From NCBI GenBank assembly GCA_025558095.1, contig JAIVFI010000004.1, positions 496,001-560,000 of the forward strand: a stretch of DNA of 64,000 nucleotides. Reading direction: 5' to 3'. The notes beneath the pieces are model-generated. The model had not been told where the DNA came from. It did no database searches and worked only from the letters and a program-made list of their open reading frames with translations. A program made the position numbers and the translations under genes. Below, in pieces: positions 25,312 to 40,280 of the stretch; within the stretch, counting starts at the first letter, position 1; each line of letters starts with the position of its first letter. Origin of the DNA: Hyaloraphidium curvatum SAG 235-1 (taxonomy: Eukaryota; Fungi; Monoblepharomycota).

Positions 25312-25556
25312 AGTCGGATCGGCAATCTGTTGATCTTTCGAGGGTTGAGGGTTGAAGGTGCAAGTCTGCAAGTCTTCAAAGTGGACTCAACTGTCCGAAA
25401 TACATAGTTGAATCGCTGATTTGCCGGTTTGGAAACTGCGGGGCTGTCGGTCCGAAAGTCGGTGGGTGATGAGTGGGCGGGCGGCACGTTTTCCCGAGAG
25501 GCGCACTCCGCGTTCCGGAGCCGGTGCCCGGCGGCAAAGGGGGCGCCTTTTCGGAA

Positions 25557-28500
25557 ATGGACGATTCGGACGGCGAGGCGCCAATTTGCGGGCGGGGCAA
25601 GCCGCCGAGGGTGCCGGACGATGACTCGGACGGCGGCGAGGTGGCGGCGGGAAAGGGCGGGTCGGGCGGTTCCAGCGAGCCGGGCGACATCGAAAGTGAG
25701 ATGACGGCTTTCATTTGCGACGGGCGGAATCTGACGGCCGGCTTCCGAAAAGCGGAGGGCGGCTCCGGGGCTTCCGGTCCAGCGGGCCAGCCTCGGAGCG
25801 GCGGGCCTTCCAAAAAGGGGGCCGGCTCGGAGGACGATGATTCGGAGAATGGAGGCGACGAAGAGATGGGGGATGGCGAGGAGCGGAGCGATGGGGAGGC
25901 GGGAGGTGGGGGTGCGAGATCCGGGGGGGTGGCCGAGCGGCGACTGACGTGTTCCGGCAGATCGAGAGGCGGACGATCAGGTGATGCAGGATGTTTGGAA
26001 GGTGCAGAAGAAGCTCGAGGGTGGGATCTGGCGTGCATCGGGTTTTGCAGCCTCTGATTTTCGGGGGTTGCAGAAGGGGACGGCGATTTCGATGCGGAGG
26101 GCTCGACGTCCGAGGAGTGCGAGGGCTCCGAGATCGGCTACGATTCGGACGAGGGCGGCGATCGTTCCGGCCAGGCGTCGGAGAGCGAGTCGGACGGATC
26201 GGATGTCGATCGGAGGCCGAGGCGGGGTCGGGGACCGGCGATGCGCGGTCGAGGCGCTCCGGGATGGGCGATGCGCGCAAAAGGGGTGCATGCTGCGGCG
26301 AGGGTGCTCGAGATGGCGGAAGCGGCCGATCCGGAAAGCGGGGCGAGCGACAACGAGGCGAGCGACGACGAGGCAAGCGAGGACGGGGCGGTCAAGCTGC
26401 GCGCGCTAAAAGGGAAGCAGGTCGTGCGGGCGGACGGGTCCTTCGGGAGCAACGAGCGGCCTTCGGCGGCGCGCCTCATGCAGCCGGCGAGCGTGCAGCA
26501 TCCCGTTCCGCGCATAACGGTCGTCGACGACGAGGCGGCGCTGTTCTTCGGGCCGGCCGGCGGTGCGGACGGAGGCGGCGATCGGACCGAGGCGCTCGAC
26601 GGCGACGGCGACGAGGAGATGGAGGTGCTCGAGAGCGGGCTCGTGGAAAAGGGGCGGCTTTCGCCGTTGGAGCTTCCGATCAAGCGGAGGGCGCCCGGTT
26701 CGCGGTCGGCCTCGCACTCGCCGCCGCCGACGCCGACGCCCAAAACTCCGGCCCGCAAGAAAAAGGCCAAGGCGGACGCGGCAGCGAAGGAGCAGGCCCG
26801 GGTCAACCCGGCGGCGGAAATTCAGCGGACGTTCATGTTTGCGCGGGACAAGCTCGGGCGCGTGTTCATGGTGCGGCGGGTGGACGACGACGGACACAAG
26901 TACCCTTGCTATGCGGCGCCGTTGTGCAAATCCAAGAACGTCGAGAACACCTTCCGGAGGCACGCCAGGACGTGCGATGAAGTCGCGAAGCTGGGCTACG
27001 GATTTCTCGACATCACCACCACGCAGTACGGGATCGATCCGCCGCCGGGGGCGTCGGCGGTTCAGCGGGCGGACAAGTTCCTGCAGAAGATGCGGGGTGC
27101 AGTGCTGTCCAACAACAAGACAGCGCCGGAGGAGGAGCGGATCCGGCCGACCAGGAAGGCGGTCAATCCCGTGATCGCGCCGGAGCTCCGGCGTGCGATC
27201 GAGGACGGCGCGTTTGCCAAGACCAGCGCTGGCGATGTGCTGCATTTCGTGCTCGGCGAGGACGGCCGCTTCGTGTGCGGGGAACACGGCTGCGCGGCAA
27301 CGGATCTCCGTCGGCACGCGGAGAAGTGCCCGGTCGCTGCCCATGCCGAGGGCGCGCTGGACCTGACGGTGACGCAGTACGGCATCGCGCCGCTGGCCAA
27401 GAAGGGCGCCACGAAGCTCGAGCGCGCGGACCACTTCCTCAACCAGCTCTTTCGAGCGACCATCTCGATCGGCAAGGCCGGCGCAGCCAGTGCGAAGCGG
27501 GCGGAAGTGATCGAGAAGGAGGCCGGGTCCGCTTTCGAGCTGAACCGCCTGAAGATCATCACCGAGCTGCTGCGGCAGACGGGCGCGGTGTCGCTGGCGG
27601 AGCTGGAGAAGGGCAAGATGTCGTACGAGTGCCTGGTGCAGGGCTGCAACCAGCAGATCCAGTAGTGGGTTCATCACGCGCAGCATCGCGCCGGCGCTCG
27701 ATTTCCCGCTGACCCACTATCCTTCCAGTGCCAAGTTCGTCTGCACGCGCGTCTGCGCCCGGCACCTCGGGGCCCAGGGCTTCGGACTCGTCGTCTGCGC
27801 CGGCTGCGGCGTTATCGCGGACTCGATCATGGCGGGCGAGTACTGCACGGCATGCCTCAGCGACGCCTCGGCATCCTCCCCGGAATCCCGGCACCTGCAC
27901 CCCCTGGCCTACGCCGACTGCGACCTCGCGCTGTACCCCCTGCCGCCGCCCGGCACGCCCATCTTCTACGGCATCCTCGGCACGCCCGAGAACCTCCCCC
28001 TGCTCCGCTTCCGCGAGAAGCTCGTCGAGGTGCGCGGAACTTTCGTCTGCAGGCCGTCGTCGTGCGGCAAGCCCAAGTTCTCGTGGGTCTTTTGCCGGCT
28101 GCGTGTCGAGCATGCGGCCTTGCTCACGCACTCTGCCGACAGGGAAGCAGCAACCTGCTCTTACGAATGCTTCCACGAGTTTGCCGCGGAATGCGGCCTC
28201 GAGTCGCCGCCCCGCTGCGCGAGGGAGCGGTGCAAGCGCGTCGTCAACTTCGGAAACCCGCGCCCCGCCTACTGCATCTGGTGCGCCAAGCACGACGATC
28301 TTCCGCCGCCCGGCGTCGGGCACCCGGCGTCGTACGCGGACTGGGTGCCGAACAGCAAGAGGTGGGCGCGACCGGCGGGGGCTTCTCGTGGCGGGGACTC
28401 ACGATTTTCCGCAGGATCCTGAAGGTGCCCGATTGCGTGCCGGCCAAGATGCCCGGCGCCAAGGAGACCTTCTTCGACGACCCCGAGAACGAGCGGCTCT

Positions 28501-28882
28501 ACTACGAGGAGAACATGGATGTCTGTGCCTACTGCAACGGGTTCCACAGGTGGGTTGTCCGCCCCGGCCGCTCGATCAGCTGCCGACCGTGCACCCGCCC
28601 CGCAGGTCGCACGACGACGACCTGGAGCCGCTCTTCTGCACACGAGAGTGCGCCGTTTCGTACGCCATCGTCGAGAACGTGCGCCTGCTCACGTGCACGC
28701 GGGGCTGCGGTCAGATGATCTCCCGCGTGCACGGGTCGATCATGCACTGCGGCGGGCCCAAGTGCCGCCAGCGGCTAACGGCCGGCACGTACTTGGACAA
28801 CGTAAGGAGCTGGCCGCAGCTTGCTCCGCTGTACCCCGAGCTCAACTTCGACGACATCTCATTCGAGGGGGACGAGGAGTAG
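25557..28882 (+). CDS. Cassette gene A: unknown ~1013-aa protein with an acidic disordered N-terminus, two tandem ~100-aa C2HC-type repeats and a multi-Cys C-terminus (6 exons)
   Basis: Phase-consistent introns at 25906-25960, 26021-26073, 27662-27728, 28362-28414 and 28550-28605 join the partial ORFs into 3042 nt. The internal repeat reads C-x4-5-C...RRHAxxC...LDxTxTQYGIxP...RADxFL, and the C-terminal half has many CxxC/CxxxC pairs. Confidence 0.7.
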
Positions 28883-29104: not shown

Positions 29105-32100
29105 ATGGCGGCCCGTAGGGCGGTCACGGGCGAGCGTGTCCGGCAGATGCTCCTCGACAATCTGACCCCGCTCGCGAGGAAGCTTGTGGACGAGGACGAG
29201 GAGGCGACGGTCAAGCTCAAGCTCGTCGGGCCGGCCGTGCAGGGGGCGCTCATGATCTTCCATGCCGAGAGTCCCTTTACGCTCGCCCATCGGGACGCGA
29301 TGCTGAGCCACCTGCGCAAGCAGCGGGGCGTGGAGCGGGCGCGCGTCGTGACCAGGACCATCAACAACCTCGACGACGGCTTCATCATCGAGGTCCTCAT
29401 CGGCAACCCCGATCCGGACCCCACGTCGCCGCACCCACACTCGAATGCGCTCTCGCAGATCCTGCGGAAGGACAAGGGCCCGGGGGCGCAGCGCTCGAAG
29501 GACGACGATGACCCGTTCGCCGGCAACCTCCCGCACCCACACGCGGCCATGCTCGCCTGGATCATCGTCGGGACGCTGCCGGTCACCGTCTGGAACCCCG
29601 CGCGAGGGGCCATGACGACTGCGGAGCGCACGGCGCAGCAGGCGCGCGTCGACGCGCTGGTGCCGCTCCGACTGCCGTACGCCCAAGTGCGCGCCCTCGT
29701 CTGCGAGGCGCTCAACTACCCGACGGGACCCCTCACGCCGCTGACCGATTCCACGAGAGTGCTGGTGCGCAAGTTCGAGCGGATGGGCAGCGACGGTTCG
29801 GACTTCTGGGCTTCCCTCGGGGTGCGGATCTTTCGAGGCGCTCGGGGCGCATCGAACTCATCGTCACGCCCTGCAGATCGGCCATGCCAGCGGTTACGCA
29901 TTCAAGACGGAGGAGCGCGCCTTGCAATGCGACTACGCTGATCTGGGCACCGTTGCGGAAGTGGTACCGCCTCCGCCGCCGCCACCCCCGCCCGAAGGAG
30001 CCGACGACGATCCCAACCCCAACCCGAACCCGAACCCGGCCGCCGATTTCGCGAACTGGAATATCCGCCGTGTGCACACCTACCCGGGCTTTTGGGGCTT
30101 GAACGTCTCCACCAAGCTGGCTCCCTTCACGGCGGCGCTGCACCTGGGCGAGGGCCACCCCGGGAACTGGGTCCCGAACGCCGCCACCATCGCTCTGCTC
30201 GGCATTCAGGAGGCGCCTATCGACCTCATCGTATGCGATCCGATTTCCGTCGGCGAGCTGCTGGACAAGGTCAAGGTGCCGCCGAACGGGACCGTGGTCA
30301 ATGGGAGCGGGCATCTGCGGAGCAAGGTGATCTCGCGCCTCGTGCATCCGACGGAGGAGCGGCTGCGCACGGCGGCACGTGCCGATCGGGGACCGCGGGC
30401 GCCGAAGGAGAGGGCGACGCTGGTCGACGACTTCTACCGGGAGGACAAGATGGCGCTGTCGACGCACAACGTGGATGCGGCCGAGTACGGCACCGGCGGG
30501 TCGCCTGACGCGCACGTCAAAAGCCCCGCTCGCCGCCCTGCCGCGTTTCCGCCCCCGCCGGAGTCGGACGACCTGCCCGAGGTCCCCCGCGTCGTGATCC
30601 AGATCCGCGTCTCGGCCAAGGATCTTGCCTCGCCGCGGGAGTGCATCTGGCAGGCGGTGGTCCTGCTCCGGGTCATCGAGTACATCGTGCGGCGCAGCGG
30701 CGTGCTCGAGATCATCTTCGTGTTCGAATACGGCGCAGTCTCAAACGCGTCGTACCCGGCGGTCCGCGACAGGAGCGTGCTCTGGAAGGCCATTGAGGGC
30801 GACTTCTCGCAGATTCGCAGCAAGCACAGGCTTGCTTTCGTCAGGCGCAGGTCCCCGGGGAACCCTCCGGTCGGTGCTCATCGGCGCACCCTCGTCCTTT
30901 CTGTCGCCCCGCACCGCATGGATCGCTTCCACCTGCGGCTGGGGGACGAGGCGGCCAAGATCTACGAGGGCCGCTTGCCCAATGACCCCGAGCGCAACAT
31001 GTTTTGCAGCTTCACCCCGGACTCGGCCGACCCGACCGAGTTTGTCGAGCTCGCGCCGGGGAGCCATGCCCTGCGCGTCGAGACGCAGCGCCTCAAGGAG
31101 CTGGAGCTCAACACCGCCGCGCGTGCCAGCAGGATGCACATCGTTGCTTCGGACATGAACTTCAACGCGGCGGTCGATCGAGGGGCCAACAGCCTGCTCC
31201 AGTTCAACATTCAGACGGTGGGCGGGCGCTTCATCTTTTGTGGGCCATGCTAACGCAAATGCTCGCACAGGTCTTTGCCTTCGTCGCCTGTCACGACTAC
31301 TCCAAGGCCGTCCTCATGGACCGCTCTTCCTCGGTCGGCAATCCCGCCTACGGCGTCGACGCGGCCGAGGCCGTGCACCCGATGACCACGCTGCGCCTGG
31401 CCAACACCAACTTCGGCGTCCACTACGTCGCCGAGCACCGCGACGACCTCGAATTCACCACCGTCAGGCTGGACCACGTCTCGGCCAGCCACGAGGACCA
31501 GGCAGAGGCGCAGTTCTTCGAGGAACTGGTCATGGTCGGATGCGCTGCGATCGTCTTTCTCCGCGACCTCTCGCGCCTGACCCGCGGCGGGATTGAGGCC
31601 GTGCTGCGAATCCTGCGCAAGCTCCAGGCCGCGAGCGCCACGCTCGTCCTCATGCACGTTCCGCACTCGTTCCTGGCAAACTGGCCGAATTGCGAGGCGA
31701 TGCTTAGGGCTCTGTGGACGCCGCTGCTGTTCGAGCGCTACCTGCACGCTGTCGGGCAAGCGGCCATGCGCGAGTTCATGAACGAGGTCGACAAGTTTCG
31801 GGCGACGGCTTCGGACTCGACACAAATGATCAACTTCCCCGTCGTCCTCCAGGGCCTGGACGGGAACCCGAACCCCGAGCTCATGCGCCGCGTCGAGACG
31901 GTCGCGGCGCGTGAACGGGCCGCGGCGCAGACGCTGGCTTCGGAGCGCTACGCCCGCTTCCTCACGCGCGTCGAGTCGTCGGCCGCGATCCCCAGCAACC
32001 TCGCTCCCCCGCCGGGCACGACCGAGGTCACGCAGGCCATGATGGTGGAGTTGGCGCAGATGGCGCAGGTCGTGGTCGGGCCGCAAACCGACGTTCGAGG

Positions 32101-32527
32101 CTACGGGCAGGACCTGCCGACGCAGGTTTACCCGGCCCCGTCGTTCACCCGGGAGGGCGTGTGCGCTTGTGAAGCACAGTTCTTTCACGTTCCCTTTTGC
32201 TGGTGCATGCCGGGCGAGTGCCCGTTCTGCGACAACTCGCAGCCCCTGCTCTGCGAGAGCGGCTGCTCGCCGTTCGACTGCCATTGCGCGCTCGGCTGTA
32301 CCTGCAGGTGCCGGCGCGGGCCCGGAAACACCCCCGCCTGGTGCTGCAAACACTCGGACATCGGCGTCACGAACCCGCAGCTGACGGCCTTCCGCATCGT
32401 CGAGGGCCTCGGCCTCGACAACGACGAGCTGCCGGTCGCCCTCCAGAGCAGGGCTCTGGTCGACGCCGACACCGCCGTCGAGGCCTACCGCAGCACCGGC
32501 GCCAAGGACGACGACGACGAGGAGTGA
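29105..32527 (+). CDS. Cassette gene B: ~1104-aa protein with two tandem serine-recombinase (resolvase)-like domains and a Cys-rich C-terminus (3 exons)
   Basis: Phase-0 introns at 29822-29876 and 31218-31270 (branch GCTAAC) join three long ORFs. Domain 1: VVIQIRVS...Q...FEYGAVSN...R...LVLSVAPHRMDR. Domain 2: AVLMDRSS...DHVSA...IVFLRDLSRLTR...LRKLQAASATLVLM. An in-frame upstream ATG at 29042 is an alternative start. Confidence 0.65.
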
Positions 32528-32541
32528 AGAGCTGGAACGAG

Positions 32542-32586
32542 TTTCACGACGGACACTTTTCGCAACGGACGCTTTCGCAACGATGC
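32542..32586. repeat. Three imperfect ~15-bp direct repeats immediately after the gene B stop
   Basis: TTTCACGACGGACAC, TTTCGCAACGGACGC and TTTCGCAACGATGC. Confidence 0.6.
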
Positions 32587-33047
32587 TTCTCCGAGATACA
32601 CACCGGATCGTGCTTCGACCGCAGATACCCTCTCGAATGTACAGCTTTGTCTTCAATTGGATTCGTTCGATTTTCCGACTTTGCCGCTTCGTCCGCCCCG
32701 TCCGAACCTCTCGCAAACCAGCCAAGAGTTATAAAAGGGCAGGCAATGAAACGGGGAGCAGAGGGAAAAGGGGAAGGTATCGAACGGGGAGGAAGCGAAA
32801 AGATGAGAAGATCGGAAATAGAGCAGTTCGAGCGAGCACTACGAAGCATTCCCGGCACGGCGAACCTAATCATGGCTTTGATGGGCACTGATCAGCTCTA
32901 CCTGCTCGTCGCTCCGGTGGCTCGAACGTCTGGCGAACGTGCCGCATCCGAGCGTCCCCCAGGTCTGCGGTGTGGCAAGTGCCGGGCCCGGATGAACCGC
33001 CATAACCCCCGCGATTCTCTCCTCGAGCAATAGCTGCTCTTTTAACC

Positions 33048-37235: not shown

Positions 37236-37980
37236 AAGGAAACGACAACGGCCGATATGAAACAGCTATTCAGCCGTACGAATCATGAGTAGGCTCGAAG
37301 AAATGTGGTCAGTTTGCTGACGCCGGCATCTGCGCAAAGTTATTCCCGCCAAGATCCCCAACCTGTAGGACAATTGCTGCAAAACCAAATGCCCAAAGCA
37401 AGAATCCAGTAGGAACAAACATTTGACGTCTTTCAGTCAATCACCGAACGCTCCACGACGGCATCTAATTCGGCCAGGCTGTTTGCCGACAGAACCAGGA
37501 GCACGAAACCGATGCAAGGGAAACGAAACCGGCCGACTTGAAACAGCAATACGAGCTTGCGAAATGGAAGTCGGCGGAAGGGCTTCGGCGAGCAGGCTGT
37601 CCTTTACATCTGCGCAAAGTTTGACCAGTTCCGGTGCCTGCCACGCAAGCGTGTCGCAGAAGGTCCAAGTGCCCAAACCAAGTATCCAGCAAAAGTAACG
37701 AACCTCTTGGCACGCATTCGATGTCGTGCGGCTCCTCGATAACGGCTCTACAAGGACCTGCGGCCTGTCGGAATGCTCGTTGCCGACGGATCTGGAACCA
37801 CGAGCCCGACGCAAAGGAAACGGCACCGGCCGATTGGAGACAGGTGTACAATAGTGCGGATATGCAACGAGCGGAATAGCTCCGGCGAGCAGGCTGTTCG
37901 CTACATCTGCGCAAAGTTCAGGCGCCAGCGGACTAGCAAGTCCAGGCGTTCGAAAACCGCCCAACGAGCCATCGGAGCGT
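37236..37980. repeat. Degenerate three-unit tandem repeat, period ~280-297 bp, in a lower-GC intergenic region
   Basis: The exact 15-mer CATCTGCGCAAAGTT occurs at 37327, 37607 and 37904. Each copy lies exactly 91 bp after a conserved AA(A/G)GGAAACG..CGGCCGA..TG.AACAG-like block (37236, 37516, 37813). Confidence 0.85.
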
Positions 37981-38399: not shown

Positions 38400-39182
38400 A
38401 CAGCCGACTCGCTCGTGGCGGGCGAGGTCTCCACCGCGTGCCTCGCCGACTCGTTGCCCCGGATCCCGAAGGTGCGGAGGCTGCACGTGCCGGCCTTCGC
38501 CAACGGCGTTGCCCGCGCCCGCGCGTTCTACGGCGCCGTCGGAATGCCGGACAAGCTCCCCATGACGCGCTTCCGCGAGGCGGTCCTCGCCGTCCGAGGT
38601 GTTCTGGTCTGCAGGCCGTCGTCGTGCGGCAAGGCCAAGAACGTGTGGGTCTTTCCTGTCCACTCGGGAGCGCCGCCTTGGCTCACAAAGCACGGCCTGC
38701 AAGGAAGCCGCGACGTGCTCGTACGTCTGCTTCCTCGGGTTCTCGAAAGACTGCGGCCTCGACGCGCCGCCCCGGTGTGGGCGGAACGGGTGCCCCCGCC
38801 TTGTCAACCTCGCCGATCCGCTGGGATGCTTGTGCTCCTGGTGCGCCACGAACGGCGACCTGGCGCCCGGGAAAGAAGGGGGGGGGGGGAGGGAGGAAAG
38901 GAGAAGGGGGGGGACGACCTGATCCCCTACTTCTGCTCGCGCGAGTGCCGCATCCTGTACTCGATCGTCGAGAACGTGCGCCTGCTCACGTGCACGCGGG
39001 GCTGCGGCCAGATGATCTCCCGCGTGCACGGGTCGATCATGCACTGCGGCGGCAGCAAGTGCCGCCAGCGGCTGACGGCCGGCTCGTACCTGGATAACGT
39101 CAGGAGCTGGCCCCAGCTCGCCCATCTGTACCCCGAGCTCAAGTTCGACGAGATCGCCGCGGCGGAGGGCGATGAGGAGTGA
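38400..39182 (+). pseudogene. Truncated, frameshifted copy of the 3' part of cassette gene A
   Basis: AGEVSTACLAD, FRE.V..VRG..VCRPSSCGK.K and EAATCSY.CF..F...CG...PPRC align to gene A in shifting frames. The last ~230 nt are near-identical to 28655-28882 (IVENVRLLTCTRGCGQMISRVHGSIMHCGG.KCRQRLTAG.YLDNVRSWPQLA.LYPEL...EGDEE*). A G-rich tract lies at 38878-38913. Confidence 0.85.
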
Positions 39183-39475
39183 AGAGGCGGCGGCGATCGG
39201 TTTGGAGCCAGCGAAAGAAGCGGCTGTCATGTCGGGCACACGGCCTCCGATGCCGATCAGCGCACCTGCACGTGCGCCGGTTCCGGTGGGTGCCTGGCGT
39301 GCGGGGGCATCCTCGCTCGCTCGGTCGTACGGGGCACCAAGCGCACGCGCGCCGAGGCGGGTCTGCCGTGACGGCTGAAGCGGTGGGCCGGACGCTACGA
39401 AATTAGTCGTGTAATCGAAGCCGTGATCGCTGGCATCTCCATTATCCCGGGCGTGAAGCAGGTCGCTGTGGAAAG

Positions 39476-40114
39476 ATGAGTCGCCGGGAAAGCCCGGTAA
39501 CAGCCCAGGAGTCGACAGTCCACCCAACCATGACCGTTCCCACGCCGCCGCCCCGTCGGCCCGTCACGGCCGAAACTGTCCGACAAAAGCTAGCCAGGAA
39601 CAGCCTGAGCGGGCTCGCGGAACGCTTGCCGGACAAGGACGAAGAGTACGACCATCTCACGGGCTACGGCTACGTCCATGGGGACAGGAAGCTCGACTAC
39701 GACTTTCCAAGCATCGGGACCGTCGCCGAGGTCGACCGGGAGGCAGAGGAGGAAGACCCGGCCAAGTGGTCGCTGCGTCGCCTGCACATCGCGCCCGGCC
39801 CCTGGGGTCACGCCGTCTCCCGCAAGCTGGCCTTCTTTGCCATCGCTCTGCATGTCGGTGATCCCGGCGCTTGGGTGCCGCGCCGAGGCGCCTACCTACG
39901 CTCGTCGGATCAGCCGCCCGACCCGATCGCCACGGGCCCGATCCCGGTCCAAGAGCTCCTGTGGGAAGCGAGGCTGCCGCAAGGTAGCGCTCTCTGGCGG
40001 AGTGAAGGCCGCCTCCGCACTTCGATCGTAGGCACGCTGGTGCGCCTCACGGACGAGTCGGCGGAAGCCGCAGGGGGGCAGAAACGCACGCGCACCGAGG
40101 CGGGTCTGCCGTGA
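39476..40114 (+). pseudogene. Internally deleted, 3'-truncated copy of cassette gene B (212-aa open ORF lacking both recombinase-like domains)
   Basis: RRPVTAETVRQKLARNSLSGLAERLPDKDEE matches the gene B N-terminus RRAVTGERVRQMLLDNLTPLARKLVDEDEE. It is joined directly to GY...DYDFPSIGTVAEV...W..RR.H..PG.WG..VS.KLA.F..ALH.G..G.WVP, which matches gene B exon 2. Confidence 0.8.
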
Positions 40115-40280
40115 ATCCCGATGCGGACGGCCGGACTTTGGACATCGATGCATTGTTCGAGGCAGTGATCGCTGATAACGGAGATCTGGGGGGCCGAGGA
40201 CGCGCCATTGCCTGGCTGGACAGGACGCCAAACCACCACCCGAGGCAGGCTTCTGAGGTCCGACCGGCCGAGCCCCGGCC

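Follow-up and report, generated by a model that had tools for sequence, protein, structure and literature searches.

The window, a 64,000-nt stretch of the Hyaloraphidium curvatum genome, contains two neighboring genes that we call gene A and gene B; these genes, their parts, the left boundary and the decayed copy described below lie on the forward strand. Gene A (25557-28882, with a provisional 5' structure), located upstream of gene B, is spliced and transcribed, and its product carries Cys/His fingers with YADWVP and CxxGCG modules. Gene B (29105-32527) has three exons and encodes a tandem serine-recombinase-like protein. The left boundary of the element was placed at 25401-25424, which it has in common with a copy on contig C15: the window and C15 copies turn alike abruptly at 25401, and outside this boundary the host genes differ. 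What remains of a second, decayed copy at 38400-40115 is the 3' portion of gene A plus a piece from within exon 2 of gene B, devoid of the recombinase domains.

The exons of gene B (29105-29821, 29877-31217 and 31271-32527) join into a reading frame of 1104 amino acids with a single stop codon, and GC3 is 0.86-0.91 in each of them. Both introns (29822-29876, 55 nt, and 31218-31270, 53 nt) are of phase 0 and are bounded by GT and AG. The original prediction had joined three open reading frames through two such introns into a protein of about 1104 residues, and this structure was found in a 2917-nt contig of the public run X1, which skips both introns and is identical to the genome from 31270 to 32645. 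The RNA label of X1 is a guess, although joints that fall at GT..AG do imply RNA that has been spliced. The presence of both exon joints in one contig rules out three separate open reading frames, and gene B is a real gene. The NCBI model of gene B, KAI9031300.1 (835 aa), is the same up to residue 823; its ending was rejected, as at residue 824 it leaves the frame through a jump that is unlike a GT/GC-AG intron in appearance and is absent from the X1 contig. Three short direct repeats (32542-32586) lie just 3' of the stop codon within the transcript, and none were found when they were sought at the other copies. The contig depth over 29105-29700, the 5' part in exon 1, was far below that over the rest of gene B. 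Two further X1 contigs match the window at 29867-30060 and then diverge upstream, which hints that this low-complexity stretch also occurs in other transcripts.

Database searches were run exon by exon, and NCBI models were used through their identifiers. Exon 1 encodes an N-terminal domain that is specific to the family, bears NPxPDP and xHPH motifs, and had no Pfam or NCBIfam match; the approximately 480 residues ahead of domain 1 as a whole were without any Pfam match. Domain 1 (30588-31190) comprises a core with R483-x-S485, E523, R536 and R586-x-x-R589 and, near 31090-31190, a helix-E-like segment. Domain 2, taken as its core and the subsequent helical part (31304-31840), contains R704-x-S706, D754-x-x-SA and S-R788-x-x-R791. 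The two serine codons start at 30612 (Ser485) and 31328 (Ser706), and the Arg and Ser residues of the R-x-S and R-x-x-R motifs are all present where the original prediction had located them. The Cys-rich tail that had also been described is encoded at 32162-32353, with 15 Cys in 64 residues; it is a candidate metal-binding or DNA-binding module, and similar tails were seen in two relatives (C27 and C25). No DNA-binding domain was identified.

Searches of the same genome, repeated with growing profiles, uncovered relatives of gene B on contigs C27, C10 and C25. The C27 relative is frameshifted and broken; those on C10 and C25 (the latter KAI9014204.1, 1549 aa) are complete tandem genes. A third complete relative, P0006, was found blind with the domain 2 profile (E 1.9e-4) among 1.84 billion proteins. 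It lies on contig L052 of run SRR26194948, from another eukaryote (approximately 55% GC, with an adjoining ADP/ATP-carrier-type gene), and has the same order as gene B, namely N-terminal domain, domain 1, intron and domain 2. Pairwise identity within the family is 15-29%, and the intron between the two domains is at an equal place in all four complete genes. The N-terminal domain is present in C25 and L052 (BLASTP E 1.5e-8 for the latter) and absent from C10. In leave-one-out tests, the profiles recovered every domain 2, with E values from 1e-8 to 1e-15. With domain 1, L052 was recovered weakly (E 0.04), and the gene B copy and C10 were not recovered; because recovery was weak or nil, the homology of domain 1 rests on its position, the intron and the motifs. 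Word-based searches with exon 3 (5.8 billion proteins) and with the domain 2 alignment gave no match, nor did metagenome scans with the N-terminal domain and gene A alignments. The viral contigs scanned gave no match either, and thus no sign of a viral origin. Downstream of the L052 homologue, a long frame (L052:12063-14588) shows a weak match to OTU protease (E 0.018) and may be part of the element.

The R-x-S motif is invariant in domain 1 and domain 2 of all four complete genes. R-x-x-R is exact in seven of the eight complete domains, and in C27 as well, preceded by S or D in domain 2 and by H, F or S in domain 1; conservation of both motifs, which the original prediction had suggested as a test, held throughout for R-x-S but not for R-x-x-R, which is disrupted in domain 2 of C10. 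In the domain 2 alignment, both Arg residues of R-x-x-R are found in five of five genes, one of them with a two-residue insertion. The domain 1 alignment has eight invariant columns, six of which fall within recombinase motifs, namely R-x-S (its Arg and its Ser), an acidic residue after strand 2, an Arg in the next helix, and the two Arg of R-x-x-R. A rule of the form "hydrophobic strand, R-x-S ... hydrophobic strand, R-h-x-R", written with the sequences already known, was satisfied by seven of the eight complete domains compared with 1-6% of the shuffles of each domain. For gene B by itself, shuffles of the protein reproduced the motif order of domain 1 in 5.8% of cases and that of domain 2 in 1.2%, so that gene B alone is suggestive and the family evidence carries the case. 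Domain 1 of gene B is the most drifted in the family, with His before R-x-x-R and no Glu in the helix-E "ER". Taken together, the Arg and Ser motifs and the conserved intron in four complete genes from two organisms bear out the proposal of a spliced protein with two serine-recombinase-type domains in tandem. With the profile and structure comparisons described next included, we consider it very probable that both domains derive from a serine recombinase.

When domains were compared with the Pfam Resolvase model (PF00239), a comparison suggested along with the original prediction, neither reached the gathering cut-off of 23.3 bits: domain 2 scored 13.7-15.5 bits, the scan returned no match for domain 1 or for the paralogues, and 15.5 bits was the best value for any domain. 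PDB sequence searches and NCBIfam gave no match, and exon 3 and its homologues matched neither the Recombinase (PF07508) nor the zinc-ribbon (PF13408) model. In hhalign comparisons with a reference of ten true serine recombinases, domain 1 scored 26.4 (E 0.003), its alignment extending through strand 4 as well as helix E. Domain 2 scored 21.8 (E 0.012), and the highest value for shuffled columns was 17.4; the N-terminal domain, used as a control, scored 14. Single sequences were marginal against the same reference, domain 1 of gene B being within the shuffle range. Neither hhalign against four fungal recombinases only nor automatic joint alignment of all domains yielded a result. Among 4,605 reading frames, the domain 1-only profile placed true recombinases at ranks 5, 8-10, 13 and 15, and the domain 2-only profile at ranks 7-9, 14 and 15; these top-ranked recombinases are interrelated and do not amount to many independent matches.

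A structural model of domain 2 (pLDDT 65) has the strand and helix order of the resolvase core. In a comparison with 48,161 chains, serine integrases came first (Z 7.0, 6.8 and 6.5; the best match had an rmsd of 5.7 over 126 aligned residues), and in a second look they occupied four of the five top rows. Sin (Z 5.7), Bxb1 (5.7), gamma-delta (5.1), TnpX and TP901-1 were also matched. At Z below 8 these scores are middling, with periplasmic-binding folds tying within 1 and Foldseek giving E 0.03 or worse. The single-sequence model of domain 1 (pLDDT 38) was uninformative. The structure alignments set model residue 9 against residue 1 of PhiC31, residue 11 against residue 1 of gamma-delta and residue 12 against residue 1 of Sin. 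If the first strand is gapless, these offsets bring the known nucleophile (for PhiC31 Ser12, named in the title of its structure entry) onto model residue 20, corresponding to Ser706. ESM Atlas features indicated STAS at 0.84 for domain 2; this fold was set aside in view of the motif order, the serine register and the blind ranking of recombinases.

We examined the surroundings of the copies, which are dispersed over at least six loci in the H. curvatum genome. A gene A module adjoins gene B at five loci (the window, its decayed copy, C15, C10 and C25), on C25 downstream of gene B; the C10 gene A region is short and has a Zn2Cys6-like cluster, and no gene A was recognized in L052. The host neighbors, identified by reading their translations, are different at every locus: the window has a cytochrome b5-domain gene and a carboxylase, C15 a peroxidase and a kinase, C10 malate synthase and an ABC transporter, C25 EF-1 alpha, and C27 a kinase and a Ty3 element. 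Pfam searches with the tested gene A frames matched no transposase and no TnpB, and the flanks of the gene B element are host genes with no TnpB/Fanzor neighbor in the part of the frames scanned, in agreement with the earlier remark that no TnpB was visible. The dN/dS ratio between copies is 0.28-0.53, as expected for element lineages that stayed functional before decaying. A contig from a relative of the L052 organism (L061) keeps synteny with L052 as far as the carrier gene, beyond which gene B is missing. This is a one-sided hint of an empty site, but it may be a synteny break, the far flank lying beyond the contig. No terminal inverted repeats, right end or target duplication were found at the element copies, and neither near-identical copies of the element in the genome nor a circle junction was found; the mobility of the element is accordingly putative and would be old.

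Several other observations were made around the copies. Just 5' of the decayed copy, the window contains three non-coding units of approximately 290 bp with an invariant 15-mer (37236-37980), which are unlike the left end of the element. A direct repeat of about 100 bp (39331-39462 and 40075-40175) brackets what is left of gene B in the decayed copy; in addition, 39160-39380 is weakly like 32785-32993, downstream of gene B; these likenesses may mark a rearranged right-end region. Directly behind the broken C27 copy lies an ABC-transporter fragment (L005:4806-5171) with approximately 90% protein identity to the ABC gene at L038:1433-1840, 5 kb from the C10 copy. This likeness, despite recombinase genes that are far apart in sequence, reflects either chance or captured DNA. 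The Cys/His module of gene A has a faint match (E 0.07) within an 8.4-kb serine-recombinase transposon (L026:~4500 and L031:~5400), and it is possible that gene A and this transposon are distantly akin. A weak match (E 0.28) to the last exon of gene A at C39:449348-449548 is possibly a further copy.

Serine recombinases of eukaryotes have been described mainly as IS607-type TnpA, and IS607-family serine transposases are known from bacteria, Lachancea kluyveri and Fanzor2 elements. Their TnpA, of about 200 residues, has a single catalytic domain directly behind an N-terminal winged-helix/MerR domain, and is usually encoded beside TnpB. The gene B element resembles this family in having a serine recombinase as its likely sole transposase. 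IS607 elements are without terminal inverted repeats or target duplication and have the serine enzyme as sole transposase (PMC6188088), and IS607-type genes have been found among eukaryotes in yeast (PMC2715888). In contrast to IS607, proteins of the gene B family are 1100-1550 residues long, with two catalytic domains, introns in their genes, a Cys-rich tail and a finger-protein partner. We therefore rejected membership in IS607/Fanzor, there being two catalytic domains, no MerR domain and no TnpB found. The class had been called unrecognized at the outset, and we likewise found no published match: the literature, with most subscription journals outside the scope, yielded neither a natural tandem serine recombinase nor any account of elements in Hyaloraphidium.

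With the resolvase/invertase group (gamma-delta, Sin, Hin/Gin; PF00239), gene B shares a strand with R-x-S, acidic and small residues, an Arg, a strand with (D/S)R-x-x-R, helix E and the topology of domain 2; it differs in scoring under the Pfam cut-off, and in its long insertions, lack of a C-terminal helix-turn-helix and duplication within the chain. The large serine recombinases (PhiC31, Bxb1, TP901-1, TnpX) give the best structural matches to domain 2 and are similar in their Cys-rich C-terminal part and S-R-x-x-R variant of the third motif, whereas gene B matches neither PF07508 nor PF13408 and has internal, doubled catalytic domains. H. curvatum also has single-domain serine recombinases (L007-L015) that, like gene B, are spliced and reside in mobile elements, but they exceed the Pfam cut-off (up to 58.8 bits) and occur in near-identical copies; no direct sequence match links them to gene B. 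Ordinary spliced serine recombinases form two families, on C9, C22 and C2 and on C4, C34 and C46, with multi-kb near-identical copies, and two copies make up a 4.66-kb palindrome at the C9 locus. Like the gene B element as proposed here, the Crypton and Starship elements of fungi depend on a spliced site-specific recombinase for their movement, but theirs is a tyrosine, not a serine, recombinase.

We favor, with moderate confidence, the explanation that gene B encodes a serine transposase with two domains in a single chain, and that it belongs to an old mobile element not described before. An alternative that we regard as unlikely is that one domain alone is active, probably domain 2, with the other structural or regulatory, so that the enzyme would nick DNA or need four chains for recombination. 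The weak score of domain 1 of gene B against the reference profile, its His in place of Asp or Ser before R-x-x-R and the missing helix-E Glu fit this idea, as does the reversed case of C10, in which domain 2 has the disrupted motif. However, neither domain shows any variation in R-x-S across the four complete genes, whose identity is about 20%, a constancy that is hard to account for unless both serines are under selection. Somewhat less probable is that these are domesticated, immobile host genes derived from a serine recombinase and used, for instance, in programmed rearrangement or DNA binding. Gene B is indeed intact, spliced and transcribed, with eukaryotic low-complexity and finger additions, and the intact copies are just about 20% alike; yet deleted and frameshifted copies are present at scattered sites (C15, C27 and 38-40 kb of the window), a sharp boundary is held in common while the host neighbors differ at each locus, and the gene is missing at one syntenic site, of which one flank is covered.

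It is more doubtful still that gene B is an accessory resolvase in a transposon of Tn3-like logic, with gene A or some other gene as the actual transposase. Gene A is the constant companion of gene B in H. curvatum, and the genome has the 8.4-kb element with an ordinary serine recombinase and the faint gene A match. Nevertheless, the tested gene A frames match no transposase family, the C10 gene A region is short and Zn2Cys6/finger-like, and inverted ends are absent. Least probable of all is that the motifs are coincidental and occur in domains of some unrelated alpha/beta fold (STAS, periplasmic-binding or Toprim-like), as the STAS indication and the close fold-search scores of periplasmic-binding proteins might suggest, given the motif order and spacing in seven of the eight domains, the serine register in the structure alignments and the blind ranking of true recombinases.

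If gene B is a two-domain serine transposase, it would be the recombinase of a low-copy eukaryotic element family that travels with gene A. To our knowledge, all characterized serine recombinases have one catalytic domain per chain and act as a symmetric tetramer. In the serine recombinase tetramer, two duplexes are cut through four phosphoserine links and two subunits rotate by 180 degrees, and the IS607 dimer has been proposed as a rotating pair (PMC4058570). Two gene B chains would supply the four active sites of such a tetramer. The link from helix E of domain 1 to the first strand of domain 2 is short, roughly 15-30 residues. So short a covalent tether would prevent strand exchange if it spanned the rotation interface, and the joined domains therefore most likely turn as a unit while bound to different duplexes (an element end and the target, or both ends). 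Such placement on different duplexes would allow unlike partner sites and would explain the lack of inverted repeats. The model predicts separable roles for Ser485 and Ser706, and DNA recognition could be provided by the Cys-rich tail, the N-terminal domain or gene A. We tentatively suggest that the family may constitute a new superfamily of eukaryotic DNA transposons, in which one chain of a natural serine transposase with two active sites makes up the rotating half of the synaptic tetramer and bridges two unlike DNA sites.

A natural two-domain chain would make the subunit-rotation model testable for each active site in turn. If the explanation is correct, gene B would show how unlike DNA sites can be joined and would provide integration tools with a scaffold already adapted to eukaryotes. 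A class of fungal transposons that repeat annotation misses would be added as well, since no family model detects gene B.
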